From positions 1 to 30,220 of the forward strand of contig JBMGUZ010000032.1 of NCBI GenBank assembly GCA_051530055.1: a DNA stretch of 30,220 nucleotides, written 5' to 3'. Positions 1 to 24,670 of the stretch are shown here, piece after piece; the first letter of the stretch is position 1; each line of letters opens with the position of its first letter. Position numbers and translations under genes: made by a program. The notes below the pieces were generated by a model. That model was not told where the DNA came from, ran no database searches, and saw only the letters and a list, made by a program, of their open reading frames with translations. This stretch comes from Neoechinorhynchus agilis (taxonomy: Eukaryota > Animalia > Acanthocephala).

Positions 1-3000
1 AATCAATGCGGCGATTTATTGTCGCAGATAGATACGAGCGGTGTCACTTTATTGTTTTTCGCGGACTACAACACAATTTTCTATCATTGCCGTAAAGTGC
101 ATTTAATATTCTTATTGTTCGTGTGCAACTTCATTGTTTACGTCATGTTCTGAATCAATGCGGCTATTTATTGTCGCAGATAGATACGAGCGGTGTCACT
201 TTATTGTTTTTCGCTAACTACAACACAATTTTCTTGCTTTGCCGTCGATTGCATTTAATATTCTTATTGTTCGTGTGCAACTTCATTGTTTACGTCATGT
301 TCTGAATCAATGCGGCTATTTATTGTCGCAGATAGATACGAGCGGTGTCACTTTATTGTTTTTCGCTAACTACAACACAATTTTCTTGCTTTGCCGTCGA
401 TTGCATTTAATATTCTTATTGTTCGTGTGCAACTTCATTGTTTACGTCATGTTCTGAATCAATGCGGCGATTTATTGTCGCAGATAGATACGAGCGGTGT
501 CACTTTATTGTTTTTCGCGGACTACAACACAATTTTCTTTCATTGCCGTCAAGTGCATTGAATATTCTTATTGTTCGTGTGCAACTTCATTGTTTACGTC
601 ATGTTCTGAATCAATGCGGCTATTTATTGTCGCAGATAGATACGAGCGGTGTCACTTTATTGTTTTTCGCTAACTACAACACAATTTTCTTGCTTTGCCG
701 TCGAGTGCATTTAATATTCTTATTGTTCGTGTGCAACTTCATTGTTTACGTCATGTTCTGAATCAATGCGGCGATTTATTGTCGCAGATAGATACGAGCG
801 GTGTCACTTTATTGTTTTTCGCGGACTACAATACAATTTTCTTGCTTTGCCGTCAATTGCATTTAATATTCTTATTGTTCGTGTGCAACTTCATTGTTTA
901 CGTCATGTTCTGAATCAATGCGGCTATTTATTGTCGCAGAAAGATACGAGCGGTGTCACTTTATTGTTTTTCGCTAACTACAACACAATTTTCTTGCTTT
1001 GCCGTCAAGTGCATTTAATATTCTTATTGTTCGTGTGCAACTTCATTGTTTACGTCATGTTCTGAATCAATGCGGCTATTTATTGTCGCAGATAGATACG
1101 AGCGGTGTCACTTTATTGTTTTTCGCTAACTACAACACAATTTTCTTGCTTTGCCGTCAAGTGCATTTAATATTCTTATTGTTCGTGTGCAACTTCATTG
1201 TTTACGTCATGTTCTGAATCAATGCGGCGATTTATTGTCGCAGATAGATACGAGCGGTGTCACTTTATTGTTTTTCGCGGACTACAACACAATTTTCTTG
1301 CTTTGCCGTCAAGTGCATTTAATATTCTTATTGTTCGTGTGCAACTTCATTGTTTACGTCATGTTCTGAATCAATGCGGCGATTTATTGTCGCAGATAGA
1401 TACGAGCGGTGTCACTTTATTGTTTTTCGCTAACTACAACACAATTTTCTTGCTTTGCCGTCAAGTGCATTTAATATTCTTATTGTTCGTGTGCAACTTC
1501 ATTGTTTACGTCATGTTCTGAATCAATGCGGCGATTTATTGTCGCAGATAGATACGAGCGGTGTCACTTTATTGTTTTTCGCTAACTACAACACAATTTT
1601 CTTTCATTGCCGTAAAGTGCATTGAATATTCTTATTGTTCGTGTGCAACTTCATTGTTTACGTCATGTTCTGAATCAATGCGGCTATTTATTGTCGCAGA
1701 TAGATACGAGCGGTGTCACTTTATTGTTTTTCTGTAACTACAACACAATTTTCTTGCTTTGCCGTCAAGTGCATTTAATATTCTTATTGTTCGTGTGCAA
1801 CTTCATTGTTTACGTCATGTTCTGAATCAATGCGGCTATTTATTCCCGCAGATAGATACGAGCGGTGTCACTTTATTGTTTTTCGCTAACTACAACACAA
1901 TTTTCTTGCTTTGCCGTCAAGTGCATTTAATATTCTTATTGTTCGTGTGCAACTTCATTGTTTACGTCATGTTCTGAATCAATGCGGCGATTTATTGTCG
2001 CAGATAGATACGAGCGGTGTCACTTTATTGTTTTTCGCTGACTACAACACAATTTTCTTGCTTTGCCGTCAAGTGCATTGAATATTCTTATTGTTCGTGT
2101 GCAACTTCATTGTTTACGTCATGTTCTGAATCAATGCGGCGATTTATTGTCGCAGAAAGATACGAGCGGTGTCACTTTATTGTTTTTCTGTAACTACAAC
2201 ACAATTTTCTTTCATTGCCGTCAAGTGCATTGAATATTCTTATTGTTCGTGTGCAACTTCATTGTTTACGTCACGTTCTGAATCAATGCGGCGATTTATT
2301 GTCGCAGATAGATACGGGCGGTGTCACTTTATTGTTTTTCGCGGACTACAACACAATTTTCTTGCTTTGCCGTCAAGTGCATTGAATATTCTTATTGTTC
2401 GTGTGCAACTTCATTGTTTACGTCATGTTCTGAATCAATGCGGCGATTTATTGTCGCAGATAGATACGAGCGGTGTCACTTTATTGTTTTTCGCTAACTA
2501 CAACACAATTTTCTTGCTTTGCCGTCAAGTGCATTGAATATTCTTATTGTTCGTGTGCAACTTCATTGTTTACGTCATGTTCTGAATCAATGCGGCGATT
2601 TATTGTCGCAGAAAGATACGAGCGGTGTCACTTTATTGTTTTTCTGTAACTACAACACAATTTTCTTGCTTTGCCGTCAAGTGCATTTAATATTCTTATT
2701 GTTCGTGTGCAACTTCATTGTTTACGTCATGTTCTGAATCAATGCGGCTATTTATTGTCGCAGATAGATACGAGCGGTGTCACTTTATTGTTTTTCTGTA
2801 ACTACAACACAATTTTCTTGCTTTGCCGTCAAGTGCATTTAATATTCTTATTGTTCGTGTGCAACTTCATTGTTTACGTCATGTTCTGAATCAATGCGGC
2901 TATTTATTGTCGCAGATAGATACGAGCGGTGTCACTTTATTGTTTTTCTGTAACTACAACACAATTTTCTTGCTTTGCCGTCAATTGCATTTAATATTCT

Positions 3001-6000
3001 TATTGTTCGTGTGCAACTTCATTGTTTACGTCATGTTCTGAATCAATGCGGCTTGTTATTGTCGCAGAAAGATACGAGCGGTGTCACTTTATTGTTTTTC
3101 TGTAACTACAACACAATTTTCTATCATTGCCGTAAAGTGCATTGAATATTCTTATTGTTCGTGTGCAACTTCATTGTTTACGTCATGTTCTGAATCAATG
3201 CGGCTATTTATTGTCGCAGATAGATACGAGCGGTGTCACTTTATTGTTTTTCGCTAACTACAACACAATTTTCTTGCTTTGCCGTCGATTGCATTTAATA
3301 TTCTTATTGTTCGTGTGCAACTTCATTGTTTACGTCATGTTCTGAATCAATGCGGCTATTTATTGTCGCAGATAGATACGAGCGGTGTCACTTTATTGTT
3401 TTTCGCTAACTACAACACAATTTTCTTGCTTTGCCGTCAAGTGCATTGAATATTCTTATTGTTCGTGTGCAACTTCATTGTTTACGTCATGTTCTGAATC
3501 AATGCGGCGATTTATTGTCGCAGATAGATACGAGCGGTGTCACTTTATTGTTTTTCGCTGACTACAACACAATTTTCTTGCTTTGCCGTCAAGTGCATTG
3601 AATATTCTTATTGTTCGTGTGCAACTTCATTGTTTACGTCATGTTCTGAATCAATGCGGCGATTTATTGTCGCAGATAGATACGAGCGGTGTCACTTTAT
3701 TGTTTTTCGCTAACTACAACACAATTTTCTTGCTTTGCCGTCAAGTGCATTTAATATTCTTATTGTTCGTGTGCAACTTCATTGTTTACGTCATGTTCTG
3801 AATCAATGCGGCGATTTATTGTCGCAGATAGATACGAGCGGTGTCACTTTATTGTTTTTCGCGGACTACAACACAATTTTCTTGCTTTGCCGTCAAGTGC
3901 ATTGAATATTCTTATTGTTCGTGTGCAACTTCATTGTTTACGTCATGTTCTGAATCAATGCGGCTATTTATTGTCGCAGATAGATACGAGCGGTGTCACT
4001 TTATTGTTTTTCGCTAACTACAACACAATTTTCTTGCTTTGCCGTCAAGTGCATTTAATATTCTTATTGTTCGTGCAACTTCATTGTTTACGTCATGTTC
4101 TGAATCAATGCGGCGATTTATTGTCGCAGATAGATACGAGCGGTGTCACTATTGTTTTTCTGTAACTACAACACAATTTTCTATCATTGCCGTAAAGTGC
4201 ATTGAATATTCTTATTGTTCGTTTGCAACTTCATTGTTTACGTCATGTTCTGAATCAATGCGGCTTGTTATTGTCGCAGAAAGATACGAGCGGTGTCACT
4301 TTATTGTTTTTCTGTAACTATAACACAATTTTATATCATTGCCGTAAAGTGCATTGAATATTCTTATTGTTCGTGCTCAACTTCATTGTTTACGTCACGT
4401 TCTGAATCAATGCGGCGATTTATTGTCGCAGATAGATACGAGCGGTGTCACTTTATTGTTTTTCGCGGACTACAATACAATTTTCTTGCTTTGCCGTCGA
4501 TTGCATTTAATATTCTTATTGTTCGTGTGCAACATCATTGTTTACGTCATGTTCTGAATCAATGCGGCGATTTATTGTCGCAGATAGATACGAGCGGTGT
4601 CACTTTATTGTTTTTCGCGGACTACAATACAATTCTCTTGCTTTGCCGTCAAGTGCATTGAATATTCTTATTGTTCGTGTGCAACTTCATTGTTTACGTC
4701 ATGTTCTGAATCAATGCGGCGATTTATTGTCGCAGAAAGATACGAGCGGTGTCACTTTATTGTTTTTCGCGGACTACAACACAATTTTCTTGCTTTGCCG
4801 TCGAGATCATTTAATATTCTTATTGTTCGTGTGCAACTTCATTGTTTGCGTCATGTTCTGAATCAATGCGGCGATTTATTGTCGCAGAAAGATACGAGCG
4901 GTGTCACTTTATTGGTTTTCTGTAACTACAACACAATTTTCTATCATTGCCGTAAAGTGCATTGAATATTCTTATTGTTCGTGTGCAACTTCATTGTTTA
5001 CGTCACGTTCTGAATCAATGCGGCGATTTATTGTCGCAGAATAGATACGGGCGGTGTCACTTTATTGTTTTTCGCGGACTACAATACAATTTTCTTGCTT
5101 TGCCGTCATGTGCATTGAATATTCTTATTGTTCGTGTGCAACTTCATTGTTTACGTCATGTTCTGAATCAATGCGGCGATTTATTGTCGCAGATAGATAC
5201 GAGCGGTGTCACTTTATTGTTTTTCGCTAACTACAACACAATTTTCTTGCTTTGCCGTCAAGTGCATTGAATATTCTTATTGTTCGTGTGCAACTTCATT
5301 GTTTACGTCATGTTCTGAATCAATGCGGCGATTTATTGTCGCAGAAAGATACGAGCGGTGTCACTTTATTGTTTTTCGCGGACTACAATACAATTTTCTT
5401 GCTTTGCCGTCAAGTGCATTTAATATTCTTATTGTTCGTGTGCAACTTCATTGTTTACGTCATGTTCTGAATCAATGCGGCTATTTATTGTCGCAGATAG
5501 ATACGAGCGGTGTCACTTTATTGTTTTTCGCTAACTACAACACAATTTTCTTGCTTTGCCGTCAAGTGCATTTAATATTCTTATTGTTCGTGTGCAACTT
5601 CATTGTTTACGTCATGTTCTGAATCAATGCGGCGATTTATTGTCGCAGAAAGATACGAGCGGTGTCACTTTATTGTTTTTCGCGGACTACAATACAATTT
5701 TCTTGCTTTGCCGTCAAGTGCATTTAATATTCTTATTGTTCGTGTGCAACTTCATTGTTTACGTCACGTTCTGAATCAATGCGGCGATTTATTGTCGCAG
5801 ATAGATACGAGCGGTGTCACTTTATTGTTTTTCGCGGACTACAATACAATTTTCTTGCTTTGCCGTAAAGTGCATTTAATATTCTTATTGTTCGTGCTCA
5901 ACTTCATTGTTTTCGTCATGTTCTGAATCAATGCGGCTATTTATTGTCGCAGATAGATGCGAGCGGTGTCACTTTGTTTTTATGTAACTACAACACAATT

Positions 6001-9000
6001 TTCTTGCTTTGCCGTCAATTGCATTTAAAATTCTTATTGTTCGTGTGCCACTTCATTGTTTACGTCATGTTCTGAATCAATGCGGCTTGTTATTGTCGCA
6101 GAAAGATACGAGCGGTGTCACTTTATTGTTTTTCTGTAACTACAACACAATTTTCTATCATTGCCGTAAAGTGCATTGAATATTCTTATTGTTCGTGTGC
6201 AACTTCATTGTTTACGTCATGTTCTGAATCAATGCGGCTATTTATTGTCGCAGATAGATACGAGCGGTGTCACTTTATTGTTTTTCGCTAACTACAACAC
6301 AATTTTCTTGCTTTGCCGTCGATTGCATTTAATATTCTTATTGTTCGTGTGCAACTTCATTGTTTACGTCATGTTCTGAATCAATGCGGCGATTTATTGT
6401 CGCAGATAGATACGAGCGGTGTCACTTTATTGTTTTTCGCTAACTACAACACAATTTTCTTGCTTTGCCGTCAAGTGCATTGAATATTCTTATTGTTCTT
6501 GTGCAACTTCATTGTTTACGTCATGTTCTGAATCAATGCGGCGATTTATTGTCGCAGAAAGATACGAGCGGTTTCACTTTATTGTTTTTCGCGGACTACA
6601 ATACAATTTTCTTGCTTTGCCGTCAAATGCATTGAATATTCTTATTGTTCGTGTGCAACTTCATTGTTTACGTCATGTTCTGAATCAATGCGGCTATTTA
6701 TTGTCGCAGATAGATACGAGCGGTGTCACTTTATTGTTTTTCGCTAACTACAACACAATTTTCTTGCTTTGCCGTCAAGTGCATTTAATATTCTTATTGT
6801 TCGTGTGCAACTTCATTGTTTACGTCATGTTCTGAATCAATGCGGCGATTTATTGTCGCAGATAGATGCGAGCGGTGTCACTTTTGTTTTTCTGTAACTA
6901 CAACACAATTTTCTTGCTTTGCCGTCAATTGCATTTAAAATTCTTATTGTTCGTGTGCCACTTCATTGTTTACGTCATGTTCTGAATCAATGCGGCTTGT
7001 TATTGTCGCAGAAAGATACGAGCGGTGTCACTTTATTGTTTTTCTGTAACTACAACACAATTTTCTATCATTGCCGTAAAGTTCATTGAATATTCTTATT
7101 GTTCGTGTGCAACTTCATTGTTTACGTCATGTTCTGAATCAATGCGGCTATTTATTGTCGCAGATAGATACGAGCGGTGTCACTTTATTGTTTTTCGCTA
7201 ACTACAACACAATTTTCTTGCTTTGCCGTCGATTGCATTTAATATTCTTATTGTTCGTGTGCAACTTCATTGTTTACGTCATGTTCTGAATCAATGCGGC
7301 TTGTTATTGTCGCAGAAAGATACGAGCGGTGTCACTTTATTGTTTTTCTGTAACTACAACACAATTTTCTATCATTGCCGTAAAGTGCATTGAATATTCT
7401 TATTGTTCGTGTGCAACTTCATTGTTTACGTCATGTTCTGAATCAATGCGGCTATTTATTGTCGCAGATAGATACGAGCGGTGTCACTTTATTGTTTTTC
7501 GCTAACTACAACACAATTTTCTTGCTTTGCCGTCGATTGCATTGAATATTCTTATTGTTCGTGCGCAACTTCATTGTTTACGTCATGTTCTGAATCAATG
7601 CGGCTATTTATTGTCGCAGATAGATACGAGCGGTGTCACTTTATTGTTTTTCGCTAACTACAACACAATTTTCTTGCTTTGCCGTCGATTGCATTTAATA
7701 TTCTTATTGTTCGTGTGCAACTTCATTGTTTACGTCATGTTCTGAATCAATGCGGCGATTTATTGTCGCAGATAGATACGAGCGGTGTCACTTTATTGTT
7801 TTTCGCGGACTACAATACAATTCTCTTGCTTTGCCGTCAAGTGCATTGAATATTCTTATTGTTCGTGTGCAACTTCATTGTTTACGTCATGTTCTGAATC
7901 AATGCGGCGATTTATTGTCGCAGATAGATACGAGCGGTGTCACTTTATTGTTTTTCGCGTACTGCAACACAATTTTCTTGCTTTGCCGTCAAGTGCATTT
8001 AATATTCTAATTGTTCGTGTGCAACTTCATTGTTTACGTCACGTTCTGAATCAATGCGGCGATTTATTGTCGCAGATAGATACGAGCGGTGTCACTTTAT
8101 TGTTTTTCGCGGACTACAATACAATTCTCTTGCTTTGCCGTCAAGTGCATTGAATATTCTTATTGTTCGTGTGCAACTTCATTGTTTACGTCACGTTCTG
8201 AATCAATGCGGCGATTTATTGTCGCAGAATAGATACGAGCGGTGTCACTTTATTGGTTTTCTGTAACTACAACACAATTTTCTATCATTGCCGTAAAGTG
8301 CATTGAATATTCTTATTGTTCGTGTGCAACTTCATTGTTTACGTCACGTTCTGAATCAATGCGGCGATTTATTGTCGCAGAATAGATACGGGCGGTGTCA
8401 CTTTATTGTTTTTCGCGGACTACAATACAATTTTCTTGCTTTGCCGTCATGTGCATTGAATATTCTTATTGTTCGTGTGCAACTTCATTGTTTACGTCAT
8501 GTTCTGAATCAATGCGGCGATTTATTGTCGCAGATAGATACGAGCGGTGTCACTTTATTGTTTTTCGCTAACTACAACACAATTTTCTTGCTTTGCCGTC
8601 AAGTGCATTGAATATTCTTATTGTTCGTGTGCAACTTCATTGTTTACGTCATGTTCTGAATCAATGCGGCGATTTATTGTCGCAGAAAGATACGAGCGGT
8701 GTCACTTTATTGTTTTTCGCGGACTACAACACAATTTTCTTGCTTTGCCGTCAAGTGCATTGAATATTCTTATTGTTCGTGTGCAACTTCATTGTTTACG
8801 TCATGTTCTGAATCAATGCGGCGATTTATTGTCGCAGATAGATACGAGCGGTGTCACTTTATTGTTTTTCGCTAACTACAACACAATTTTCTTGCTTTGC
8901 CGTCAAGTGCATTTAATATTCTTATTGTTCGTGTGCAACTTCATTGTTTACGTCATGTTCTGAATCAATGCGGCTATTTATTGTCGCAGATAGATACGAG

Positions 9001-11692
9001 CGGTGTCACTTTATTGTTTTTCGCTAACTACAACACAATTTTCTTGCTTTGCCGTCAAGTGCATTTAATATTCTTATTGTTCGTGTGCAACTTCATTGTT
9101 TACGTCATGTTCTGAATCAATGCGGCGATTTATTGTCGCAGATAGATACGAGCGGTGTCACTTTTGTTTTTCTGTAACTACAACACAATTTTCTATCATT
9201 GCCGTAAAGTGCATTGAATATTCTTATTGTTCGTGTAACTTCATTGTTTACGTCATGTTTAATCAATGCGGCTATTTATTGTCGCAGATAGATACGAGCG
9301 GTGTCACTTTATTGTTTTTCGCTAACTACAACACAATTTTCTTGCTTTGCCGTCAATTGCATTTAATATTCTTATTGTTCGTGTGCAACTTCATTGTTTA
9401 CGTCATGTTCTGAATCAATGCGGCGATTTATTGTCGCAGATAGATACGAGCGGTGTCACTTTATTGTTTTTCGCGGACTACAATACAATTTTCTTGCTTT
9501 GCCGTAAAGTGCATTTAATATTCTTATTGTTCGTGTGCAACTTCATTGTTTACGTCATGTTCTGAATCAATGCGGCTATTTATTGTCGCAGATAGATACG
9601 AGCGGTGTCACTTTATTGTTTTTCTGTAACTACAACACAATTTTCTATCATTGCCGTAAAGTGCATTGAATATTCTTATTGTTCGTGTGCAACTTCATTG
9701 TTTACGTCATGTTCTGAATCAATGCGGCTATTTATTGTCGCAGATAGATACGAGCGGTGTCACTTTATTGTTTTTCGCTAACTACAACACAATTTTCTTG
9801 CTTTGCCGTCAAGTGCATTTAATATTCTTATTGTTCGTGTGCAACTTCATTGTTTACGTCATGTTCTGAATCAATGCGGCGATTTATTGTCGCAGATAGA
9901 TACGAGCGGTGTCACTTTATTGTTTTTCGCGGACTACAATACAATTTTCTTGCTTTGCCGTAAAGTGCATTTAATATTCTTATTGTTCGTGTTCAACTTC
10001 ATTGTTTACGTCATGTTCTGAATCAATGCGGCTATTTATTGTCGCAGATAGATACGAGCGGTGTCACTTTATTGTTTTTCTGTAACTACAACACAATTTT
10101 CTATCATTGCCGTAAAGTGCATTTAATATTCTTATTGTTCGTGTGCAACTTCATTGTTTACGTCATGTTCTGAATCAATGCGGCGATTTATTGTCGCAGA
10201 TAGATACGAGCGGTGTCACTTTATTGTTTTTCGCTAACTACAACACAATTTTCTTGCTTTGCCGTCAAGTGCATTTAATATTCTTATTGTTCGTGTGCAA
10301 CTTCATTGTTTACGTCACGTTCTGAATCAATGCGGCGATTTATTGTCGCAGATAGATACGAGCGGTGTCACTTTATTGTTTTTCGCGGACTACAATACAA
10401 TTTTCTTGCTTTGCCGTAAAGTGCATTTAATATTCTTATTGTTCGTGTTCAACTTCATTGTTTACGTCATGTTCTGAATCAATGCGGCTATTTATTGTCG
10501 CAGATAGATACGAGCGGTGTCACTTTATTGTTTTTCTGTAACTACAACACAATTTTCTATCATTGCCGTAAAGTGCATTGAATATTCTTATTGTTCGTGT
10601 GCAACTTCATTGTTTACGTCATGATCTGAATCAATGAGGCTATTTGTTCGCGCAGATAGATACGAGCGGTGTCACTTTATTGTTTTTCGCTAACTACAAC
10701 ACAATTTTCTTGCTTTGCAGTCGAGTGCATTTAATATTCTTATTGTTCGTTTGCAACTTCATTGTTTACGCCATGTTCTGAATCAATGCGGCGATTTATT
10801 GTCGCAGAAAGATACGAGCGGTGTCACTTTATTGGTTTTCTGTAACTACAACACAATTTTCTTGCTTTGCCGTCAAGTGAATTTAATATTCTTATTGTTC
10901 GTGTGCAACTTCATTGTTTACGTCATGTTCTGAATCAATGCGGCGATTTATTGTCGCAGAAAGATACGAGCGGTGTCACTTTATTGTTTTTCTGTAACTA
11001 CAACACAATTTTCTTTCATTGCCGTAAAGTGCATTTAATATTCTTATTGTTCGTGTGCAACTTCATTGTTTACGTCATGTTCTGAATCAATGCGGCTATT
11101 TATTGCCGCAGAAAGATACGAGCGGTGTCACTTTATTGTTTTTCTGTAACTACAACACAATTTTCTTGCTTTGCCGTCAATTGCATTTAATATTCTTATT
11201 GTTCGTGTGCAACTTCATTGTTTACGTCATGTTCTGAATCAATGCGGCGATTTATTGTCGCAGATAGATACGAGCGGTGTCACTTTATTGTTTTTCGCTA
11301 ACTACAACACAATTTTCTTTCATTGCCGTCAAGTGCATTGAATATTCTTATTGTTCGTGTTCAACTTCATTGTTTACGTCATGTTCTGAATCAATGCGGC
11401 GATTTATTGTCGCAGATAGATACGAGCGGTGTCACTTTATTGTTTTTCTGTAACTACAACACAATTTTCTATCATTGCCGTAAAGTGCATTGAATATTCT
11501 TATTGTTCGTGTACAACTTCATTGTTTACGTCATGTTCTGAATCAATGCGGCTATTTATTGTCGCAGAAAGATACGAGCGGTGTCACTTTATTGTTTTTC
11601 TGTAACTAAAACACAATTTTCTTGCTTTGCCGTCAAGTGCATTGAATATTCTTATTGTTTGTGGTCAACTTCATTGTTTACGTCATGTTCTG
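1..11692. repeat. Tandem satellite, 152-bp unit, about 77 copies, continuing beyond the left edge of the window
   Basis: Unit aatcaatgcggcgatttattgtcgcagatagatacgagcggtgtcactttattgtttttcgcggactacaacacaattttcttgctttgccgtcaagtgcattgaatattcttattgttcgtgtgcaacttcattgtttacgtcatgttctg recurs every 152 bp. Differences are concentrated at a few diagnostic sites (gcga/gcta/gcttg; cgcgg/cgcta/ctgta; cttgct/ctatca). The last intact gttctg ends at 11692. Confidence 0.99.
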
Positions 11693-11830
11693 TGATGTGC
11701 CATAGTTTTGTTCATCGGCTTTAAATCTGCTCCTTTTCTTTTTTCTTCTGTGACTGGTGAACAAGTTGCTTATTGTGCCGACACTGAAATGAATGTCTGT
11801 ATTGTTGTAGCGGAAGGTTGATGTTCGCGA
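11693..11830 (-). pseudogene. Degenerate edge unit of the satellite / coding repeat
   Basis: 11747-11806 aligns to the coding repeat at about 41/61 nt (e.g. versus 14331-14391). The minus strand reads AQ*ATCSPVTE, versus DQQAACAPVTN/ITE in the protein. Confidence 0.65.
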
Positions 11831-12065
11831 CAAGTACGCATTTGAATTGTAATTTATCTACTCAATTTTTAGATCGTATCTTAAAGGGGGAAAATGCGTT
11901 TTAAAGATTCGAATGAAGTTTATACAAATAGAGATAAGAAACATCAAAAAGCTAAATATTTTAAACTTCAATTTGCAAAATTTATATTATGAATCTTTAG
12001 TCTTGCACAGTAGACATGCAACATTGTATTTGATTCGCCAGCGGAAAAATAACAATGATTTTTAT

Positions 12066-15000
12066 TTAGTCGTCGCTTAATATCTGGTTTAACAAATTAT
12101 CTTCATCGGAGTCTTCATCGCTGTCAAATTGACTCTCCTCTGGATTTCCGTTTGTATTATTAGTCGCGTCATTTTCCTGGTCCTCCTCGGTGTTATCGTT
12201 TTTCCTCGGACTGTCAGCGATCCCCAACGCTGCTCGTATCGCGTCCTCTAGTTGAAGAGTTTCAGCATCCTTTGGTTTTCGTATTACCTCCGCCGGTGGT
12301 TCGGATGGTGGTAATTCCTCACGAACGGATTGGGGTGTCATCTCGCCACCTTCAGAATAATCTTCTTCTTCGGATTGTTCTCCTTCTGGAGTGCAAGGGC
12401 GAAAAAGTATGTTTTCTAGGAACATGTTATCAGTTTGATTAGCATCAACGCTCATATAGCTTTCGGCCGGACTGGTAGCCGAAGCGCTTGAAGATAGATT
12501 AAGTTCCTCTATCGATCGAGGATATTCTAAAATGTACTGCGCGAGCGTTGCCTCGTCGAACTGAGATGATCCGTTAAATTGATCCTTTGTTTCAACTCCA
12601 ACTGGAATGGGTATATGTTGCTCAGATTCAAATTGTTCATTGATCTTGTGATATTGTTGGTGGTGTTCAGTTTGGGGCTCCTGCTGGTTTATCGGTCCAA
12701 AGTTAACATCGGGAGAAAAATTGAAGTTATCACGATCGTTGTCTGGCGCTTCAAATGAAAAATAGTGCTCGTGTTCGACGTTTGGCCGACGATATCTATC
12801 TAAATCTTCATTGGCAATCTCATATCTATCAGCCGACAATGTATTAAATATAGTCCCCCTTTGCTCATCGTGTAGATTTACGGTGTCATCCAGCTGCAGT
12901 TCAGCGGCACTTCGAGTTTCATTCTCTGCTCTAATCTGATTATTTTCTAATCGTTCTCCGGTCAGATGAGATTTCTGCTCGTTTAGCAACCGGAAATTTT
13001 CTTGGTAATCCTCATCATTAAGCCCAACTTTATCCGAAAAATTACGCTGGTTGCTTTCGTGTGCCCCCTTGATTTCAGCTTCAATATTTGGTTCAGGACA
13101 CATCTTTTGCTTTTTAGGTGGATGACATTCCGAAACGTCGTGTGTCCTTTTAGTGCTTTGTTTATCGGAAAAAATTTGGTGGCTCCGTATTGATTTTTGT
13201 TCACACATCTGCTCATTCGACTTCGCCGTTTCATCAGTTACCTTATTCGAGGACAGATCTGCTGCTTGACAGTTTTGTACGCCCGTCATATTTTCTCTTT
13301 GCGTACAATTAATTTTTTGCATTTTGCTTAATTCCTTATAATTATCGGTGCCTTCATATTGCCTTTTCATTGCCGTTATTGAATTTTGATTGAATCGTTT
13401 TTGGCCACTCGCCGATCGATCATCGCCATCCTTATTGATCATTGAAGCACAGTTCATTGAATATCCTTGCTGTTTGCGTGGAACTTCATTCTTAACCTCA
13501 GTGTTCTGATTTGGCGCCGCTATTTCGTGTTGTTGATAAAAATGCGCCGTCGTAATGTTTTGTGGATTGGTTACTGGGGCACAAGCCGCTTGCTGATCCT
13601 GCAAGTCCATTGAATATCCTTGCTGCTCGCGTTGATCTTCATTGTTAACCTCAGTGTTCAGATTTTGCGCCGCTATTTCGGTTTGTTGATAGAGACCCGC
13701 CGTCGCCATGTTTTGTGTATTGGTGACTGGGGCACAAGCCGCTTGCTGATCCTGCAAGTGCATTGAATATCCTAGCTGTTCGCGTTGATCTTCATTATTT
13801 ATCCCAATGTTCTGATTTGGCGCCGCTATTTCGTGTTGTTGATAGAAACCCGCCGTCGCCATGTTTTGTGGTTCGGTGATTGGAGCACAAGCCGCTTGCT
13901 GATCCTGCAAGTGCATTGAATATCCTTGTTGTTCGCGTGGATCCTCATTGTTTACGCCAGTGTTCAGATGAGGTGCCGCTATTTCGAATTGTTGATAGAG
14001 ACCCGCCGTCGCCATGTTTTGTGTATTGGTGACTGGGGCACAAGCCGCTTGCTGATCCTGCAAGTGCATTGAATATCCTAGCTGTTCGCGTTGATCTTCA
14101 TTATTTATCCCAATGTTCTGATTTGGCGCCGCTATTTCGTGTTGTTGATAGAAACCCGCCGTCGCCATGTTTTGTGGTTCGGTGATTGGAGCACAAGCCG
14201 CTTGCTGATCCTGCAAGTCCATTGAATATCCTTGCTGCTCGCGTTGATCTTCATTGTTAACCTCAGTGTTCAGATTTTGCGCCGCTATTTCGGTTTGTTG
14301 ATAGAAACCAGCCGTCGCCATGTTTTGTGGTTCGGTGATTGGAGCACAAGCCGCTTGCTGATCCTGCAAGTGCATTGAATATCCTTGTTGTTCGCGTGGA
14401 TCCTCATTGTTTACGCCAGTGTTCGGATGAGGTGCCGCTATTTCGAATTGTTGATAGAAACCCGCCGTCGCCATGTTTTGTGTATTGGTGACTGGGGCAC
14501 AAGCCGCTTGCTGATCCTGCAAGTCCATTGAATATCCTTGCTGCTCGCGTTGATCTTCATTGTTAACCTCAGTGTTCAGATTTTGCGCCGCTATTTCGGT
14601 TTGTTGATAGAAACACGCTGCCGCCATGTTTTGTTGAACGGTTACTTGAGCACAAAGCGCTTGCTGATCCTGCAAGTGCATTGAATATCCTTGTTGTTCG
14701 CGTGGAACTTGATTGTTTACCCCAGTGTTCGGATGAAGTGCCGCCATTTCGAATTGTTGATAGAAACCCGCCGTCGCCATGTTTTGTGTATTGGTGACTT
14801 GGGCACAAGCCGCTTGCTGATCCTTCAAGTGCATTGAATATCCTTGCTGTTCGCGTTGATCTTCATTGTTAACCTCAGTGTTCTGATTTGGCGCCGCTAT
14901 TTCGTGTTGTTGATAAAAACCTGCTGTTGCCATTTTTTGTGGATTGGTTACTTGGGCACGAGCCGCTTGCTGGCCATGCAAGTTTATTGAATATCCTTGT

Positions 15001-16532
15001 TGTTCGCGCGGAACTCTATTGTTTACGTCTGCGTTCTTATTAGGTGCCGCTATTTGGTGTTGAGGATAGTAGCCCGCGGTTGCCATGTTATGTTGATCGG
15101 TGAATGGAGCACAAGCCGTTTGCTGGTCCTGCAAGTGCATTGAATATCCTCGTTGTTCGCGTTGAACTCTATTGTTTACGTCCGGGTTCTGATTGGGTGC
15201 CGCTATTTGGTGTTGTTGATGGAAACCCGCTGCCGCCATGTTTTGTTGATCGGTGAATGGAGCACAAGCCGCTTGCTGGCCCTGCAAGTGCATTGAATAT
15301 CCTTGTTTTTCGCGTAGAGCTCTATTGTTTACGTCAGCGCTCTGATTAGGTGCCACTACTTGGTGTTGTTGATGGAAACCCGCTGCCGCCATGTTTTGTT
15401 GATCGGTGAATGGAGCACAAGCTGGTTGCTGGCCTTGCAAGTGCATTGTAAATCCTTGTTGTTCGCGTGAAACTGTATTGTTTACGTGAGCGTTCTGGTT
15501 AGGTGCCGCTATTTGGTGTTGAGGATTGTAACTCGCGGTTGCCATGTTTTGTTGATCGGTGAATGGAGCACAAGCCGCTTGCTGGCCATGCAAATTAATT
15601 GAATATCCTTGTTGTTCGCGTGAAACTCTATTGTTTACGTCAGCGTTCTGATTAGGTGCCACTATTTGGTGTTGTGGATAGTAGCCCGCGGTTGCCATGT
15701 TTTGTCGATCGGTACCACTAATCATTCGAACAGGATTTGCCATCAATGTAGGATGTATGTTTTGGCCACTATTTCCAAAATTTAATCGTTCTGTTGGCGG
15801 TTGTTGTTCTTGCTGCCATTGTTGCTGATATTGAGCAGGCTGTTGTTGGTTGTTCATCTGAGTTCCGTAGTTATGCACTCCCGATGGGTCTTGGGCATTT
15901 TGCAATGTTCCAATATTTTGGAGAGCTGGGTTATGGTAAATGTTTTGCGGATTGCCGTTTCCTTTAATAAAATTCTGAGCTGTCATCATGGGATTTGGCT
16001 GTTGCATTTGCTGCGTGCCGTAAAGGTGACCCGTATTGCCGAATTGTTGGAAATTTTGGTTTTGGAAGGCATTTGCATTGGTTATCGGACCCAAATTTTG
16101 TTGGAAATGCCCTTGCACATTCGGGTTGTAGAAATTTCCTTGAGCATACGGTGCCATAACAGCGGCTCCATTTCCACCAGCCGCAACAGCATATGGTACG
16201 GCACCATCGTAGGTAAGATTTTGAGCTTGAAATTCGTCCCTGTTCCTTAGACGACCATCCTGATAGCATCCATTGACAGCCCAGTGCATTCCTCTAGGAC
16301 CGTGAGATACTCTTACCCGTATAAACTTATTGCTCACAGATAATGTATGGCGAACTGAGTTTTGCCAACTTTTTACTTCCTTCTCGTCAGTTATTGCGGC
16401 AAAATAGGGATAATTCTGTTTAAAATAATCGTAAATCTTTTGTAGTGGCAGTGTGCGATTAGGAGCGTTGCTGATCGCCAACCTGGCTATTTCGGAAATG
16501 CTTATATCTCCCCACGCATTATGTCTCGGCAT
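12066..16532 (-). CDS. Divergent FoxO-like forkhead transcription factor with a 51-aa tandem repeat region and acidic C-terminus (1488 aa, single uninterrupted ORF)
   Basis: The N-terminus RHNAWGDISISEIARLAISNAPNRTLPLQKIYDYFKQNYPYFAAITDEKEVKSWQNSVRHTLSVSNKFIRV...HWAVN matches the FoxO pattern RNAWGNLSY...[31 protein letters not shown]...WWMLN. It includes the FoxO-specific 11-residue YF-to-W spacing. The 4.4-kb frame has no stops, and an in-frame TGA lies 9 codons upstream of the ATG. This is a paralog rather than canonical FoxO, so no symbol is given. Confidence 0.9.
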   Translation of the reverse strand: MPRHNAWGDISISEIARLAISNAPNRTLPLQKIYDYFKQNYPYFAAITDEKEVKSWQNSVRHTLSVSNKFIRVRVSHGPRGMHWAVNGCYQDGRLRNRDEFQAQNLTYDGAVPYAVAAGGNGAAVMAPYAQGNFYNPNVQGHFQQNLGPITNANAFQNQNFQQFGNTGHLYGTQQMQQPNPMMTAQNFIKGNGNPQNIYHNPALQNIGTLQNAQDPSGVHNYGTQMNNQQQPAQYQQQWQQEQQPPTERLNFGNSGQNIHPTLMANPVRMISGTDRQNMATAGYYPQHQIVAPNQNADVNNRVSREQQGYSINLHGQQAACAPFTDQQNMATASYNPQHQIAAPNQNAHVNNTVSREQQGFTMHLQGQQPACAPFTDQQNMAAAGFHQQHQVVAPNQSADVNNRALREKQGYSMHLQGQQAACAPFTDQQNMAAAGFHQQHQIAAPNQNPDVNNRVQREQRGYSMHLQDQQTACAPFTDQHNMATAGYYPQHQIAAPNKNADVNNRVPREQQGYSINLHGQQAARAQVTNPQKMATAGFYQQHEIAAPNQNTEVNNEDQREQQGYSMHLKDQQAACAQVTNTQNMATAGFYQQFEMAALHPNTGVNNQVPREQQGYSMHLQDQQALCAQVTVQQNMAAACFYQQTEIAAQNLNTEVNNEDQREQQGYSMDLQDQQAACAPVTNTQNMATAGFYQQFEIAAPHPNTGVNNEDPREQQGYSMHLQDQQAACAPITEPQNMATAGFYQQTEIAAQNLNTEVNNEDQREQQGYSMDLQDQQAACAPITEPQNMATAGFYQQHEIAAPNQNIGINNEDQREQLGYSMHLQDQQAACAPVTNTQNMATAGLYQQFEIAAPHLNTGVNNEDPREQQGYSMHLQDQQAACAPITEPQNMATAGFYQQHEIAAPNQNIGINNEDQREQLGYSMHLQDQQAACAPVTNTQNMATAGLYQQTEIAAQNLNTEVNNEDQREQQGYSMDLQDQQAACAPVTNPQNITTAHFYQQHEIAAPNQNTEVKNEVPRKQQGYSMNCASMINKDGDDRSASGQKRFNQNSITAMKRQYEGTDNYKELSKMQKINCTQRENMTGVQNCQAADLSSNKVTDETAKSNEQMCEQKSIRSHQIFSDKQSTKRTHDVSECHPPKKQKMCPEPNIEAEIKGAHESNQRNFSDKVGLNDEDYQENFRLLNEQKSHLTGERLENNQIRAENETRSAAELQLDDTVNLHDEQRGTIFNTLSADRYEIANEDLDRYRRPNVEHEHYFSFEAPDNDRDNFNFSPDVNFGPINQQEPQTEHHQQYHKINEQFESEQHIPIPVGVETKDQFNGSSQFDEATLAQYILEYPRSIEELNLSSSASATSPAESYMSVDANQTDNMFLENILFRPCTPEGEQSEEEDYSEGGEMTPQSVREELPPSEPPAEVIRKPKDAETLQLEDAIRAALGIADSPRKNDNTEEDQENDATNNTNGNPEESQFDSDEDSDEDNLLNQILSDD
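13452..15713 (-). repeat. Coding tandem repeat, 153 bp / 51 aa, about 15 units
   Basis: Example unit FTDQQNMAAAGFHQQHQIAAPNQNPDVNNRVQREQRGYSMHLQDQQTACAP. The 153-bp period is confirmed by ttgtttac at 15631, 15478, 15325, 15172 and 15019. Confidence 0.97.
16272..16532 (-). other. Forkhead (winged-helix) DNA-binding domain, FoxO subfamily
   Basis: NAWG start motif; recognition helix W-Q-N-S-V-R-H-T-L-S retains the Asn, Arg, His and Ser used for base contacts in FOX proteins; KFIRV and W-x-x-N strands are present. Confidence 0.92.
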
Positions 16533-18068
16533 ATTGTTTTCAAGAATTTGGAGCTTTCAATGGTTTTAAAGAGATAAAAGAAGATTTGAACCGTTTGTGA
16601 ATTGAGAGGGGATAACAACACACTCATCTTAGGTCGTTTTGACTTATGTTTTCAGGAGATTTGGCAAACAGTTTATGGATAAACTATTTACCATTCAAAC
16701 CACAAATTTGTCAATATCTCGGTGTTTTCATCCCCAATATTACACTAGGTTTTGTCACCGTACGTATTCCGTACTAGAGGTGATGTATTGAAGAAACGAA
16801 GACAATTTAGAACTCATTGTTTATGTCCGGTGTTATTGCTGCCGATTGATAATACACGAAGTGCCATACGATGCTCAGTCGCATGTTCCTCGTAGAGTTC
16901 CATTGTCACAAGTTCTTGAGATTTCAAAGGCGAAATTTAAGGTGCTCCTCATCGATTGATAATGCGATAAAAATAGCCTTACATGCCAGAGCGATCATCG
17001 AAGTCATGCTGGGAATTTATTACACTCAATGAGCCATCATCCCGTATTTTGGAATTCGGATTATAAGGTCCAGAAGATTGGATTGAGGATTGTTGTGCAG
17101 AGTTTTCCTATCTATAGTTTATGTCGTCTTTTATTTGAATTTACAATGGTGCATCTTAGTCTCTATACTTAAAGTAAACATACTTTCCCGATTGTTTCTT
17201 TAATTTACGTTTCAATCACTAAAATTAAGAAGAGTCTAGGTTAGAATTGTTTTTAGAAAGTAGATCACATTCAAAAGATTTGGTATGGTCAATTTGAATA
17301 ATAAGAAAAATATAGATGCATTGGATGGGGACGGATCCGTAAACCAGTTAAACACGAATATTCTAATATAGAATTCGGTATTTGGCGTTCATATTCGGTG
17401 TACTGATCCACAAGGCGACTCGAAAATAAATCGGTAGGTCAGTTGTGGACACCCGATAGAGATCATAAGAGACGAATATATTTCGACTGATTGAATCAAT
17501 GATTATCAATTCAATTGTTTCGACCTCGAAAAATATTCGTCTCTAATGATCTCTCCCGGTTATCGACAAGCGACCAAAACAACAATATCTCTAACCACCA
17601 CTCGAATGTAATCCTCAATAAAAAATCATATAGGCGAGTCGGAAAATTATGTGAAGGATGTTTGTCGCCAGTTGACCGTGGAGCTTTAAAGTGGACTTAT
17701 TTTTTGAAGGTCGATTAAACAATAATTCAGCGTTTCACTCTGGAATCTTTCTAGTCTAAATCAATGAAGGTATTATTTACGCTTGAAGTATTGCAAAAAT
17801 TTCGACTCGTCGTCCGAGCTAAACAGTTTTAACTCTAAGTTTAGAAAGCTGTATAAAATATCGGTGAACCAACGATATTTCACTTGCATAAAAAATCAAA
17901 TTTCGTCTTCTCGTTTGGTCAGTCGCAAGGACCAAAACCTTAGAAAGACAATACAATGGGCATTGTTGGATATTTTGGCGTGCAATTTTTAAATACCTTC
18001 AATTATGATTCTTAAGTTATTCGTCTTTCAATTTTTAGACCAATAACTTTGATTATCGATATGAAGTT

Positions 18069-18725
18069 TTAAAATCCACCTGTGTAGTTCCTCTTTGTTC
18101 TATTACACAAACTTCCCAGATCCATCTCTTCACCACCCGGAACCGCCGCAAGGACACTTGCAGCGTTGCCGCGCTGGATCGCGAGACCTATGTTTTGCAG
18201 GAAGGACGTTCCTGCTCTTGGGTCTCCGGTTGCGATCCTCATCTTCCTTGAAAGATCCGCCGTAAAGTTCTTGGCCTCAGCACCGAAGGCACCGAGCGTC
18301 TCAACGCCGAAAGGGACGAAGTGATGTGCCCTCAAGAGCTCCGCGTACTTCCCGCGCTTGCGTTCCTCTGCGGCAATTGCAGCACCTCCTTCGCGCCTTG
18401 AGGGGACAGGGAAAGGGTGTCCACCCCAGAGAAGGGATTTCCCTTCTGGCCACGGGAACACAGTTATCTCGTCCGGTCTCCGACCGTCGAGTCTGCAGAG
18501 GTGACTCGGTTCGAGCAGATTCGGTGCGTGTATCGTGTTTAAGGCCTGACTAATAACCGAGTTAATCTCAGCGTGGCGAGCATACCTGCCACCGGACTGG
18601 CGACAGACGAGACCGTGTCTACCCAAAGAATCCACAAGGGCCCCACAACGACAGTAGTGTGGGACACAAATCGGGAGACCTAGTCGTAAGGACACTGCGA
18701 TCCTTGATTTCATTCCACGCAGTAT
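18069..18725 (-). mobile_element. 5'-truncated CRE-clade non-LTR retrotransposon fragment (CCHC zinc knuckle plus restriction-like endonuclease)
   Basis: LRLGLPICVPHYCRCG..GRHGLVC..GGRYARHAEIN..RRPDEITVFPW..FVPFGVETLGAFG..LAIQRGNAASVL. It lacks the D-x-x-C-V-D-T segment seen in the 25318 copy, consistent with an internal deletion. Confidence 0.85.
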
Positions 18726-19102
18726 TTCGAAAACTGAGGAATCTCATATTATGAGATAAACATCGGTTATGAGCACACCTACTCTTGTTTGCATTTACAA
18801 ATGAGTATTTCGCTCCATTTTTTTCGTTTTCGTATTGCGGGATTTATGATCAGAAGCGCAATTACTATTTCTCATTGTTATCTTGATTGTCGCTAATTCC
18901 GACATTCAAAGGGATATTAAGTATTTGCATTTAAATCGTGTAACAGCTAAAGGAGTCGTCAAAATTGATCCGGAGGTTTTTCCTTATGCAAGTTTTTTAA
19001 CACGTTTTTCCGAATATTGTCAATTTGATCTGCATCTAAAAAACCTTCTAATATTCACCTCGCTTTAAATCTGATAAACATACCCCGATTTTGTTGATTT
19101 AG

Positions 19103-19591
19103 ATGGCGACTGCTCGTAAAAAACAACCGAGACGAAGTGATCGTCAAATCGCTAAGATAAACTTGGAGTTTTGTAAGTTTTACCTCATTCTCTCATGCAT
19201 TGACAGTTTACTGTTGGTGCTTCAAATTGGATGGGCCACCTACTTCAAGGCTGGAGTAACACCATTTGAAAAAGGTCTCTATGGTTCAACCGCGATAACT
19301 TGTTGGTTATCGTTTTTATTCCTAAGATGGCTAGGAAATCCGGCATCAAGTCATAACGTTGATCTGTCGGATTCTTTTATTGGCGATTTCTTCAAGGACG
19401 TGATTATATGGAATCTGGCTGTTCATTCATTGACAATGGTAACCATATACGCATGGATATTGTGGATATTCGTTCCAGCTCGCTTCTTATTTGTTGCCTA
19501 CAACGCTCTTGTCGTTCCTTGGAAAAGTGCTAATCAATTAGTGGATACCTCTGATAGTCCGCAAAAAGGAAAAATTCGTAAAAAAACTTAA
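19103..19591 (+). CDS. TMEM208: TMEM208/SND2-like membrane protein (DUF788), divergent, intronless, 162 aa
   Basis: RQIAKINLEFCKFYL resembles KQIFEENRETLKFYL. VDLSDSFIGDFFKDVIIWNLAVHSLTMVTIYAWILWIFVPARFLFVAYNALVVPW resembles [56 protein letters not shown] (human TMEM208 recalled from memory). Hydrophobic segments and a basic C-terminal tail are present. Confidence 0.8.
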   Translation: MATARKKQPRRSDRQIAKINLEFCKFYLILSCIDSLLLVLQIGWATYFKAGVTPFEKGLYGSTAITCWLSFLFLRWLGNPASSHNVDLSDSFIGDFFKDVIIWNLAVHSLTMVTIYAWILWIFVPARFLFVAYNALVVPWKSANQLVDTSDSPQKGKIRKKT

Positions 19592-19920
19592 AAGGACTTT
19601 AAATCTCGATTTTTGCTCCTCAGGATACAGTAAAACTCACATTCGTTGACAGCTTTTATTTTTGGGGAAAAGTGCGTAACGGTAAACGATGGTAAAATTG
19701 ATTTTTACCTAAAAGTTCGAACGCCTTTTTTTTGTATTCCTCAATATAATTGTTTTGTTAGGATATTCAACAGTATATTTCTGATTTAAATTAAAAACAT
19801 TGAAGCAATGAGGTTCAATTAGTGGATTGCCCTGGTTTGCAATATGCCAACTACGTGGATAATTTCTAGTCATATCTGCAATAAACCAGATTTTTCATAA
19901 AGAAATATTCTATCCTATTG

Positions 19921-22900: not shown

Positions 22901-24030
22901 TGGATGTGTATTCTCAATAGCGAATTGTAACACACTCGAGTTTTACTGAACTCTTCATTGGGAATTTTTAAGGCCACAGCCCATCGAGTGGATGTCTATT
23001 CTCAATGGCGAATTGTTACACATTCGAATTTTATTGAACTTTTCATTGCGAATTTTCAAGCCTCAGCCCTTCGAGTGGATGTCTATTCTCAATGGCGAAT
23101 TGTAACACATTCGAATTTTATTGAACTGTTCATTGCGAATTTTCAATACCTCAGCCCTTCGAGTGGATGTGTATTCTCAATAGCGAATTGTAACACACTC
23201 GAGTTTTACTGAACTCTTCATTGGGAATTTTGAAGGCCACCATCGAGTGGATGTCTATTCTCAATGGCGAATTGTAACACACTCGAGTTTTACTGAACTC
23301 TTCATTGCGAATTTTCAAGCCTCAGCCCTTCGAGTGGATGTGTATTCTCAATGGCGAATTGTAACACATTCGAATTTTATTGAACTCTTCATTGCGAATT
23401 TTCTAGGCCTCAGCCCTTCGAGTGGATGTGTATTCTCAATAGCGAATTGTAACACACTCGAGTTTTATTGAACTCTTCATTGCGAATTTTCAAGCCTCAA
23501 CCCTTCGAGTGGATGTGTATTCTCAATAGCGAATTGTAACACACTCGAATTTTATTGAACTCTTCGTTGCGAATTTTCAATACCTCAGCTCTTCGAGTGA
23601 ATGTGTATTCTCAATGGCGAAGTGTAACACACTCGAGTTTTATTGAACTCTTCATTGCGAATTTTGTAGGCCTCAGCCCTTCGAGTGGATGTGTATTCTC
23701 AATAGCGAATTGTAACACCCTCGAGTTTTATTGAACTCTTCATTGCGAATTTTCAAGCCTCAGCCCTCCGAGTGGACTTGTATTCTCAATAGCGAATTGT
23801 AACACACTCGAGTTTTACTGAACTCTTCATTGCGAATTTTCAAGGCATCAGCCCTTCGAGTGGATGTGTATTATCAATGGGGAATTGTAACACACTCGAG
23901 TTTTATTGAACTCTTCATTGCGAATTTTCAAGGCCTCAGCCCTTCGAGTGGATGTGTATTCTCAATTGCGAATTGTAACACACTCGAGTTTTATTGAACT
24001 CTTCATTGTGAATTTTCAAGGCCTCAGCCT
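19921..24030. repeat. Tandem satellite/minisatellite, 88-bp unit (some 87 bp), about 46 copies
   Basis: Unit tcgagtggatgtgtattctcaatggcgaattgtaacacactcgagttttactgaactcttcattgcgaattttcaaggcctcagccct, with starts at 20013, 20101 and 20189. Indel-rich stretches occur near 20810-20960 and 21860-22260. Confidence 0.98.
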
Positions 24031-24161
24031 CCTTCCCAAGCGTCTAGAAATGGAGGCTACCAATCCATTTTTAGATGCTTGAGAAGGAGGCTGAGGCCTT
24101 GAAAATTCGCAAGGTTGACTTCAATAAAACTTGAGTGTGTTACAATTGGCCGTTGAGAATA
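23957..24161. repeat. Fold-back inverted repeat capping the 88-bp array (98-bp arms, 9-nt loop)
   Basis: 23957-24054 is the reverse complement of 24064-24161 with about 12 mismatches; loop ggctaccaa. Confidence 0.92.
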
Positions 24162-24274
24162 AAGAAATATGTATGAATATAAGGATTTGCTTTTTTGAGT
24201 ATTCAAGTGAATATCCCTTACACGGCTTATTATTTTAATTCGACTCACAGCCCACCGATTCATTGGTCAGGCAA

Positions 24275-24670
24275 TTTATTCCCACAGGTCCTTAAATACA
24301 ACCCAAGGAAGCAGAGCTCATCAGTGAGTTCCCTTCACTCCTTAGCGATATTTAATCAATTTTTGTTATGAGTCATCGGCGACCGTTAAGGAGAGGGGAG
24401 GGACCGAATGGCTCAGGGCATACCAAAATCAATTGGCTGTGTGCCCAAGAAATCAGCCGTGTAATAACCACTTCAAAAAACTCAAGACCGTTAATTTTAT
24501 CGTTTGTGTGTAACTTGCCGGTTAAATTTAAATCGTTGAAGTAATTATTACACTGCTGATTTCTTTGGCACTCGGCCAATCGATTTCGGTATGTCCTGAG
24601 CCATTCGGTAAATCCCGAGGAAACGGGACTCATCAGTGAGTTTCTTTTGATTATGCATCATCGGCGATTG
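24275..24670 (-). mobile_element. Two decayed copies (about 24275-24380 and 24610-24670) of the SINE-like body also found at 27500-27600
   Basis: Shared core (gg)gactcatc(a/c)gtgagtt(t/c)c plus collinear flanks, e.g. attcccacaggtccttaaatac versus attcctccggatcctcagatac, and cttagcgatattt..gtcatcggcg versus cttcagcggtattt..gtcattggtg. Confidence 0.55.
24403..24609. repeat. MITE-like inverted repeat (arms about 65-74 bp)
   Basis: accgaatggctcagggcataccaaaatc...gtgtaataa (24403-24467) matches the reverse complement of 24545-24609 with about 7-8 mismatches, and extends inward as acttcaa/ttgaagt. Confidence 0.85.

Follow-up and report, generated by a model that had tools for sequence, protein, structure and literature searches.

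What is the origin of a satellite array that stands beside a gene whose own exon holds a tandem repeat of almost the same unit length? The question is raised by scaffold JBMGUZ010000032.1, an unplaced scaffold in the assembly (GCA_051530055.1) of Neoechinorhynchus agilis, an acanthocephalan (thorny-headed worm) that parasitizes fish. The scaffold was analysed in its entirety (30,220 bp) and is called the window here. It contains an array of 152-bp satellite units next to an intact FoxO-like forkhead gene, and the gene carries a minisatellite of 153-bp (51-codon) units (Table 1). On comparison of these sequences we think it reasonably probable that the 152-bp satellite descends, as a non-coding form, from the 153-bp coding minisatellite of a FoxO-like gene family that is specific to the N. 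agilis lineage. The data directly show homology between the units, a module of gene end, spacer and satellite that recurs at a second locus, a hybrid junction followed by a dead gene tail, a degenerate unit at an array edge, a bias of the differences towards A/T and an open frame in the genes.

Table 1. Coordinates of the satellite, the FoxO-like gene and their boundaries in the window
Feature	Position	Strand	Remarks
152-bp satellite array	1..11692	(-), same orientation as gene	77 units (Tandem Repeats Finder); non-coding in the gene frame
Degenerate unit at the array edge nearest the gene	11693..11860 (168 bp)	(-)	Fossil in which coding and satellite states are mixed
True 3' flank of the gene	11861..12065	(-)	Common to the satellite-free copy B; AATAAA hexamer overlaps the stop codon
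FoxO-like forkhead open reading frame, intact, 1488 aa	12066..16532	(-)	Annotated as ACOME3_010619, 1507 aa
Unique C-terminal tail, 461 aa	12069..13451	(-)	Acidic SDEDSDEDNLLNQILSDD motif at its end; 99.5% identical to copy A including the spacer
Coding minisatellite, 14 full 153-bp (51-codon) units and partial edge units	13436..15717	(-)	Gln/Ala/Asn-rich
Forkhead DNA-binding domain, FoxO type, aa 3-88	16269..16526	(-)	Similarity to FoxO3, FoxO4 and FoxO1

Homology of the satellite and the coding repeat

The array at window 1-11692 was described by Tandem Repeats Finder with a period of 152 bp, 77.0 copies and 94% matches. A length of exactly 152 bp was found for 69 of the units, and the mean pairwise difference among the window units is 4.7%. 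The array reaches the scaffold end, so that its length of 11.7 kb is a minimum and its far end lies outside the window. Two other arrays of this satellite, one of at least 7.9 kb and one of 7.5 kb, were found in a chromosomal region designated L001, and the consensus sequences of the three arrays differ from each other at 0-4 of 152 positions. The repeat has several properties of satellite DNA, namely a head-to-tail unit within the range of about 100-400 bp, high identity between units, long homogenised arrays at more than one locus and a lack of coding capacity.

The coding repeat was delimited at window 13451-15713 with a period of 153 bp, 14.8 copies and 85% matches, and it lies within a single open reading frame (ORF). 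Its consensus is translated as QNTEVNNEDQREQQGYSMHLQDQQAACAPVTDPQNMATAGFYQQHEIAAPN. Thirteen columns are invariant across the 14 window units and another eleven are nearly invariant. The unit is a multiple of three and its frame is open in every copy, as in a coding minisatellite, the copies not being independent of each other.

A search by nhmmer with the satellite consensus recovered the 77 satellite units together with all fifteen coding units, on the same strand and near end to end (model positions ~7-145); the full coding units had E values between 1e-9 and 1e-14. The satellite and coding consensus sequences share 107 of 153 positions in the same orientation, with a single 1-bp gap. Their global alignment scored 55, whereas dinucleotide-preserving shuffles, for which every rotation was allowed, scored -15.5 +/- 3.4 with a maximum of -6 (z = 21); the alignment with the reverse complement scored -22. 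From this comparison of sequences we regard the homology of the two repeats, in the same orientation and register, as certain. An earlier note on this DNA, made by eye, had already proposed the homology, and its proposal is upheld by the shuffled controls. Its hand count of about 102/153 identities for the coding unit at 15132-15284 also proved exact, with 102 identities and one gap column. The p-distance from satellite to coding units is 0.30-0.39, compared to ~0.15 among the coding units.

Read in the frame homologous to that of the gene, the satellite gives EHDVNNEVAHEQ*EY*MHLTAKQENCVVVSEKQ*SDTARIYLRQ*IAALIQN, and each window unit contains three to four stops in addition to the frameshift left by the 1-bp gap, in agreement with the earlier description of a frameshifted and non-coding repeat. 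The stops are located at codon 14 (CAA in the gene), codon 17 (TCA; 43/76 units), codon 35 (AAC) and codon 46 (GAA in 37/60 and CAA in 22/60). The earlier statement that two of them replace CAA is therefore roughly right, as it holds for codon 14 but codon 46 is more often GAA.

On the opposite strand, antisense ORFs of 102-138 aa extend across two to three satellite units in all three frames (window 438-9413, plus strand). No homolog of the antisense ORFs (100-138 aa) was found in a collection of 5.8 billion proteins, and the low A content of this strand probably accounts for them. Neither a tRNA gene (ARAGORN) nor an Rfam family was detected in the window, and an origin of the satellite from tRNA, rRNA or snRNA is accordingly unsupported.

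The FoxO-like family and its recurring module

The annotation ACOME3_010619 adds a short 5' extension, up to window 16627, to the ORF listed in Table 1. The forkhead domain has its best matches in FoxO3, FoxO4 and FoxO1 (E ~1e-14, gapless over 86 residues, 3-88), while FoxK1, FoxK2 and the other Fox classes were matched at 6e-10 or weaker. Being closest to FoxO and having a segment between helix 2 and helix 3 of FoxO length, the domain belongs to the FoxO type. Its recognition helix 3 reads NSVRHTLS, in which the Asn, Arg, His and Ser that make the base contacts of FoxO structures are conserved. The domain begins at residue 3, leaving no N-terminal regulatory region, and no Akt/PKB motif (RxRxxS/T) is present anywhere in the 1488-aa protein. 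Downstream of the domain follow a Gln-rich linker, the 51-aa repeats and the 461-aa tail with its acidic end. Searches with the whole protein against the 5.8-billion-protein collection and with its N-terminal 275 aa found relatives in N. agilis only, and the same was observed for the 51-aa unit in an exhaustive profile search of 1.84 billion representative proteins. By its sequence the protein appears to be a divergent, lineage-specific paralog and not a canonical FoxO.

At least three paralogs of this gene were found, two of which are followed by the satellite. The window gene is termed W, the paralog P0001 in region L001 is termed A and the paralog in region L002 is termed B; both regions are on CM121341.1 at 4.69-4.74 Mb. 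Another region of CM121341.1 at 9.71-9.73 Mb, designated L004, is the counterpart of the window. It matches window 16042-26003, with 661 bp at 100% identity in the 5' part of the gene and ~96% identity elsewhere. The gene copy in L004 is broken at about codon 165 (L004 1-6936; breakpoint at window ~16040) and is annotated as the 198-aa P0005. The cut is followed by a retrotransposon without long terminal repeats, which has a gag-like ORF with a CCHC zinc knuckle and a reverse-transcriptase ORF with YADD. The window thus looks like the uninterrupted allele of the 9.72 Mb locus.

Copy A is intact and encodes 2212 aa with ~29 units. Its satellite (L001 17082-24586) starts 373 bp past the stop codon, and a second array lies upstream of the gene (L001 1-7862). 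The earlier note had placed the window array about 370 bp past the stop codon of W. The distance is likewise 373 bp, although its last 168 bp consist of the degenerate unit, so that repeat sequence begins at about 205-225 bp. A module made up of gene, 373-bp spacer and satellite hence occurs at a second locus 5 Mb away on CM121341.1. The W tail and spacer (11693-13355) are 99.5% identical to copy A, compared to 93% for the 5' part of W. The first two satellite units past the spacer match by position between W and A, with one difference each versus 8-11 off the diagonal, and the unit order is lost beyond the second unit. These matching units, together with the near-identical tail and spacer, indicate that the satellite was in place before the 3' module was last copied or converted, and the interiors of the arrays turn over more quickly than point mutations build up. 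The earlier suggestion of a satellite born in place beside W was not sustained, since recurrence of the module at a second locus points to a duplicated module and not to a local birth in the window.

The window array has the same consensus as the array upstream of A and differs at 4/152 positions from the array downstream of A. Despite the identical consensus, contiguity of the window array with the upstream array was rejected, because no overlapping sequence was found (longest exact match 276 bp, best alignment 96%) and the window belongs to the 9.72 Mb locus. The upstream array of A stops abruptly at unit position 5 (L001 7862 / L002 5038). The adjoining 1.96 kb are 98.5% identical to the region upstream of copy B, which places the sharp breakpoint of a duplication within the satellite. 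In and around the forkhead domain, A and W differ at ~18 of 120 residues, including helix 3 (NSVRHTLS vs NYVRHKLS), while their tails are 99.3% identical. The contrast points to gene conversion of the 3' half, together with a relaxed or diversifying evolution of DNA recognition.

In copy B (L002 7453-15050) there are ~34 coding units. The tail of this copy is longer and differs strongly, and the satellite is missing downstream of the gene. Two degenerate in-frame edge units of this copy are 70% and 61% identical to the coding consensus; these fossils are as diverged from it as the satellite itself. No further relic units were found at E <= 0.1 upstream or downstream of copy B, upstream of the W gene or in L004. 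The forkhead domain of copy B is intact, and three frame changes (near 8424-8468, 9571-9700 and 12726-12840) accompany its annotation as four proteins; they may be true disabling mutations or indel errors of long reads. About 170 bp past the B stop codon, at L002 15218-15307, a 30-aa fragment was observed with 77% identity to residues 451-480 of the B tail. It is another remnant of an incomplete duplicate of the gene beyond a live copy, here without a repeat array.

The edges of the arrays retain traces of the gene family. Between the stop codon of W and the satellite, the 3' flank is 88.5% identical over 96 bp to the flank of copy B and has no similarity to the repeat. The degenerate unit that follows was aligned locally to the coding consensus with z = 6.2 and to the satellite with z = 4.7, and none of 1000 shuffles scored as well; these values hold for a scoring scheme suited to ~55% identity, under which, as with the profile hidden Markov model (HMM), the match is significant, whereas harsh scoring gave z ~2. 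The profile search (nhmmer) returned E = 2.5e-7. At the diagnostic sites the unit carries the coding state 18 times, the satellite state 14 times and neither state 12 times.

The distal edge of an array is visible in L001 only. A hybrid unit at L001 24528-24644 begins there with 42/42 bp of satellite consensus and then switches cleanly to 75 bp of coding type. This second part is up to 93% identical to coding units (median 87%, as among the coding units) and 60% identical to the satellite. It encodes GYSINLQGQQAACAPVTDPQNITTA, the NITTA motif of which is that of the last unit of the live W and A genes. Past the hybrid unit lie frameshifted remnants of the C-terminal tail, including pieces like SHLTGERLENNQ and QITSTHGNLSKIVK...LQHNSDIEF, with 84% identity to the W/A tail (82 columns) and 82% to the B tail (143 columns). 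At 24528-24900 the array downstream of A is thus bordered by relics of the same gene, which keep the order and orientation of the gene. As the hybrid unit is directly followed by the frameshifted tail, the array lies where the coding repeat of a dead, 5'-truncated paralog would be expected. The earlier note took the adjacent intact gene as the donor, which the data do not show, as the sister array passes through the hybrid unit into the tail of a dead paralog.

Direction of descent and competing explanations

In a tree of all units, a stem of 0.316 substitutions per site, recovered in 200/200 bootstrap replicates, sets the satellite apart from all 68 coding units. The earlier expectation of a satellite nested within the diversity of the coding units is rejected by this stem, and the satellite is old, having split off before the last common ancestor of the present coding units.

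The direction of descent was addressed by other properties of the sequences. The coding consensus has G/C where the satellite has A/T at 24 sites, versus six sites of the reverse kind (p = 0.0014), and the coding consensus is richer in G+C (49%) than that of the satellite (37%). When the in-frame fossil units of copy B were used to polarise the changes, the satellite branch showed 13 changes from G/C to A/T versus two from A/T to G/C. Such a shift is the expectation for neutral decay in an A/T-rich genome and would be odd if reversed. The reverse route would also need to undo the 1-bp loss and three to four stops per unit. The coding arrays contain no stop in the 14 units of W and none in 28 units of A, where 6.6 and 22.9 would be expected without constraint, although this test counts substitutions shared by units as independent and its significance is overstated. 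The A/T bias, the 1-bp loss and the stops, the open frame of the gene, copy B without satellite and the array end in gene remnants all favour descent from coding repeat to satellite, which is the best supported direction and, on these indirect lines, a likely one. The earlier note had argued for the same direction; it is favoured by the A/T-ward differences, the stops and the open gene frames, and it is unproven with the satellite as an outgroup.

The sequence of events that we infer would start just downstream of a live gene, where a further copy, or a partial duplicate of a 3' end, lost its 5' half and left its repeat array untranslated. The freed array would then have decayed towards A/T, lost one base and gained stops, after which unequal crossing-over might have multiplied one decayed variant and homogenised it into arrays of 7 to >12 kb. 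Together with the 373-bp spacer and the satellite, the 3' end of the gene would later have been copied or converted between the loci 5 Mb apart, and satellite and coding arrays would have recombined in register at least once.

Several observations weigh against this account. The coding part of the hybrid unit is diverged from live coding units by 7-13%, and the dead tail is diverged by 16-18%, whereas the satellite is diverged from coding units by ~40% over the same 75 bp. The far higher divergence of the satellite indicates a lineage older than the hybrid junction, which may therefore have been formed by a later deletion or recombination of an existing satellite with the next gene copy and may not be a birth site. 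The unit tree cannot be rooted, as the satellite forms an outgroup on a long stem. Constraint on the coding repeat is weak, with a dN/dS of 0.59 and diversity that is flat over codon positions, and the stop-codon test suffers from the overstatement mentioned above. Finally, the divergence between satellite and gene is uneven, with seven differences in the first 55 columns (87% alike) and 38 in the next 99 (p = 8e-4), a pattern that simple neutral decay does not predict. It may have resulted from later exchange between the arrays, from stronger protein constraint on QNxxVNNExxREQQGYS or from constraint on the satellite.

Some of these points would fit a homologous satellite that arose once elsewhere, came to adjoin the genes through similarity-driven recombination or segmental duplication and left the hybrid unit as a deletion scar. 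This we consider unlikely, though it draws on the satellite being far more diverged than either the coding part of the hybrid or the dead tail, and on a crossover at unit position 42/43, which falls within the most similar block (87%, columns 1-55). It also draws on the locus being a mosaic of conversions (93% in the gene 5' part vs 99.5% in the 3' part; 98.5% in the region upstream of A and B). All three arrays that were found nevertheless adjoin members of the family, and the proximal edge is a degenerate unit of mixed states at a fixed distance from the stop codon; even with an origin elsewhere, the ultimate ancestor would still be common with the coding repeat.

Capture of an older non-coding satellite into a FoxO-like ORF, which would make the coding repeat the derived form, is improbable in our estimation. 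A satellite that is sister to all coding units instead of lying among them would agree with such a capture, as would the absence of the 51-aa unit from other organisms among the representative proteins searched, and weak coding constraint fits a young exonic repeat. The capture would, on the other hand, need a 1-bp gain and the removal of three to four stops per unit before the coding array expanded, and a net shift from A/T to G/C (the 13 vs 2 changes reversed) despite the A/T-rich background. It is further opposed by copy B, whose coding array has old in-frame edge fossils (61-70% identity) but no downstream satellite, and by the satellite array that terminates in the remains of a gene tail.

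It is very improbable that gene and satellite were brought together falsely by an assembly artefact, the 30-kb scaffold being a chimera or a collapsed haplotig: the unplaced scaffold does terminate inside an array, and the 5' half of the window matches the 9.72 Mb locus while the 3' part is 99.5% identical to the locus at 4.73 Mb, but the arrangement of gene, spacer and satellite is also found inside a 19.4-Mb chromosome-level sequence, the coding array is just 2.3 kb long and in the copy at 9.72 Mb the gene is interrupted by a retrotransposon, the kind of difference to be expected between alleles.

Binding motif, neighbourhood and significance

The window protein resembles FoxO/DAF-16 in the gapless alignment of its forkhead domain to FoxO1/3/4, including the segment before helix 3, and in that its repeat holds the exact FoxO/DAF-16 binding element, GTAAACAA. 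It differs from FoxO/DAF-16 by lacking the N-terminal regulatory region and the Akt site and by the long Gln/Ala/Asn-rich repeat after the domain. Exact copies of GTAAACAA occur 84 times in the window, where 2.2 would be expected. The motif is present in 75 of the 77 satellite units of the window, in 171 of the 175 satellite units examined altogether and in 47 of the 68 coding units, where its codons specify Val-Asn-Asn; a random unit of matching composition carries it about 1% of the time. It sits in the block that is least diverged between satellite and gene. Additional conservation of the motif within the satellite was not supported, as it ranks 28th among 145 eight-base words. On a further reading, which we consider improbable, the satellite motif would descend from the Val-Asn-Asn codons of the coding repeat, and each array might offer at least 75 predicted tandem sites to the neighbouring forkhead proteins. 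The arrays could then titrate these proteins, nucleate chromatin or serve in the autoregulation of the gene family. If true, a transcription factor gene would have spawned an array of its own binding sites from its own exon.

Further repeats were observed in the neighbourhood. A second, unrelated satellite with 88-bp units (47 copies, 88% matches) occupies window 19923-24029 and L004 10821-14769; of its longer periods, 263 bp (~3 units) scores best in the window, compared to 351 bp (~4 units) in the chromosome allele. At L004 16743-20487, where the window has retrotransposon remains (beyond ~26003), ~28 copies of a 136-bp unit form a third satellite. Broken retrotransposon ORFs are located at window 18069-18713 and 25318-28689, both on the minus strand; a reverse-transcriptase fragment with YLDD is among them, and a conserved C-terminal domain (GLVCR.SGGR..RH.EIN...) occurs in them twice. 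Window 25315-25586 shares 78% identity with L002 3738-3995. Two other genes are present on the plus strand, a single-exon TMEM208/SND2 gene of 162 aa at 19103-19591, which is identical on the chromosome, and the first exon of a gene for an EF-hand calcium-binding protein at 29507-29830.

Among known systems, the seeds of satellite DNA named in the searched passages of a review (PMC5615363) are rDNA (ribosomal DNA) spacers and transposable elements, with no example of a protein-coding exon. Satellite arrays derived from retrotransposons have also been described (PMC7004042). The N. agilis satellite is like the satellites seeded by rDNA spacers or transposons in that an existing tandem array was released, amplified and homogenised with degenerate units remaining at the edges, on the reading of coding-to-satellite descent given above; it is unlike them in its seed, which here would be a translated 51-codon minisatellite of a transcription-factor gene. 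The genome and transcriptome paper on N. agilis mentions neither satellites nor forkhead genes.

Gene-derived arrays are represented by Stellate/Su(Ste) of Drosophila and by coding macrosatellites such as D4Z4/DUX4, in which each repeat comprises an entire gene or retrogene of 1-3 kb. They share with the present case a unit taken from protein-coding sequence that is near or interacts with its parent family, whereas here a single intragenic unit of 152 bp has lost its reading frame. Coding minisatellites are known as exons with a variable number of tandem repeats, e.g. the mucin repeats and the zinc-finger array of PRDM9. The repeat of the FoxO-like family is similar to these in a unit divisible by three, a copy number that varies among paralogs (~15/29/34), concerted evolution and blocks of subtypes. 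No non-coding satellite twin adjoining a coding-minisatellite gene was found in the literature searched, and we know of none beside mucin or PRDM9 arrays.

Satellites are known to arise from tandem repeats that exist already, and the present case is an unusual variant of this process. One genome keeps the stages side by side, from live coding arrays through in-frame fossils, a degenerate edge unit, a hybrid unit and a dead tail to a homogenised satellite, and the retained FoxO motif offers a possible functional angle. The locus provides a concrete and testable route by which an exonic minisatellite may become satellite DNA. Coding and non-coding arrays that are still able to recombine would bear on the stability of genes with internal repeats as well as on their assembly and annotation.

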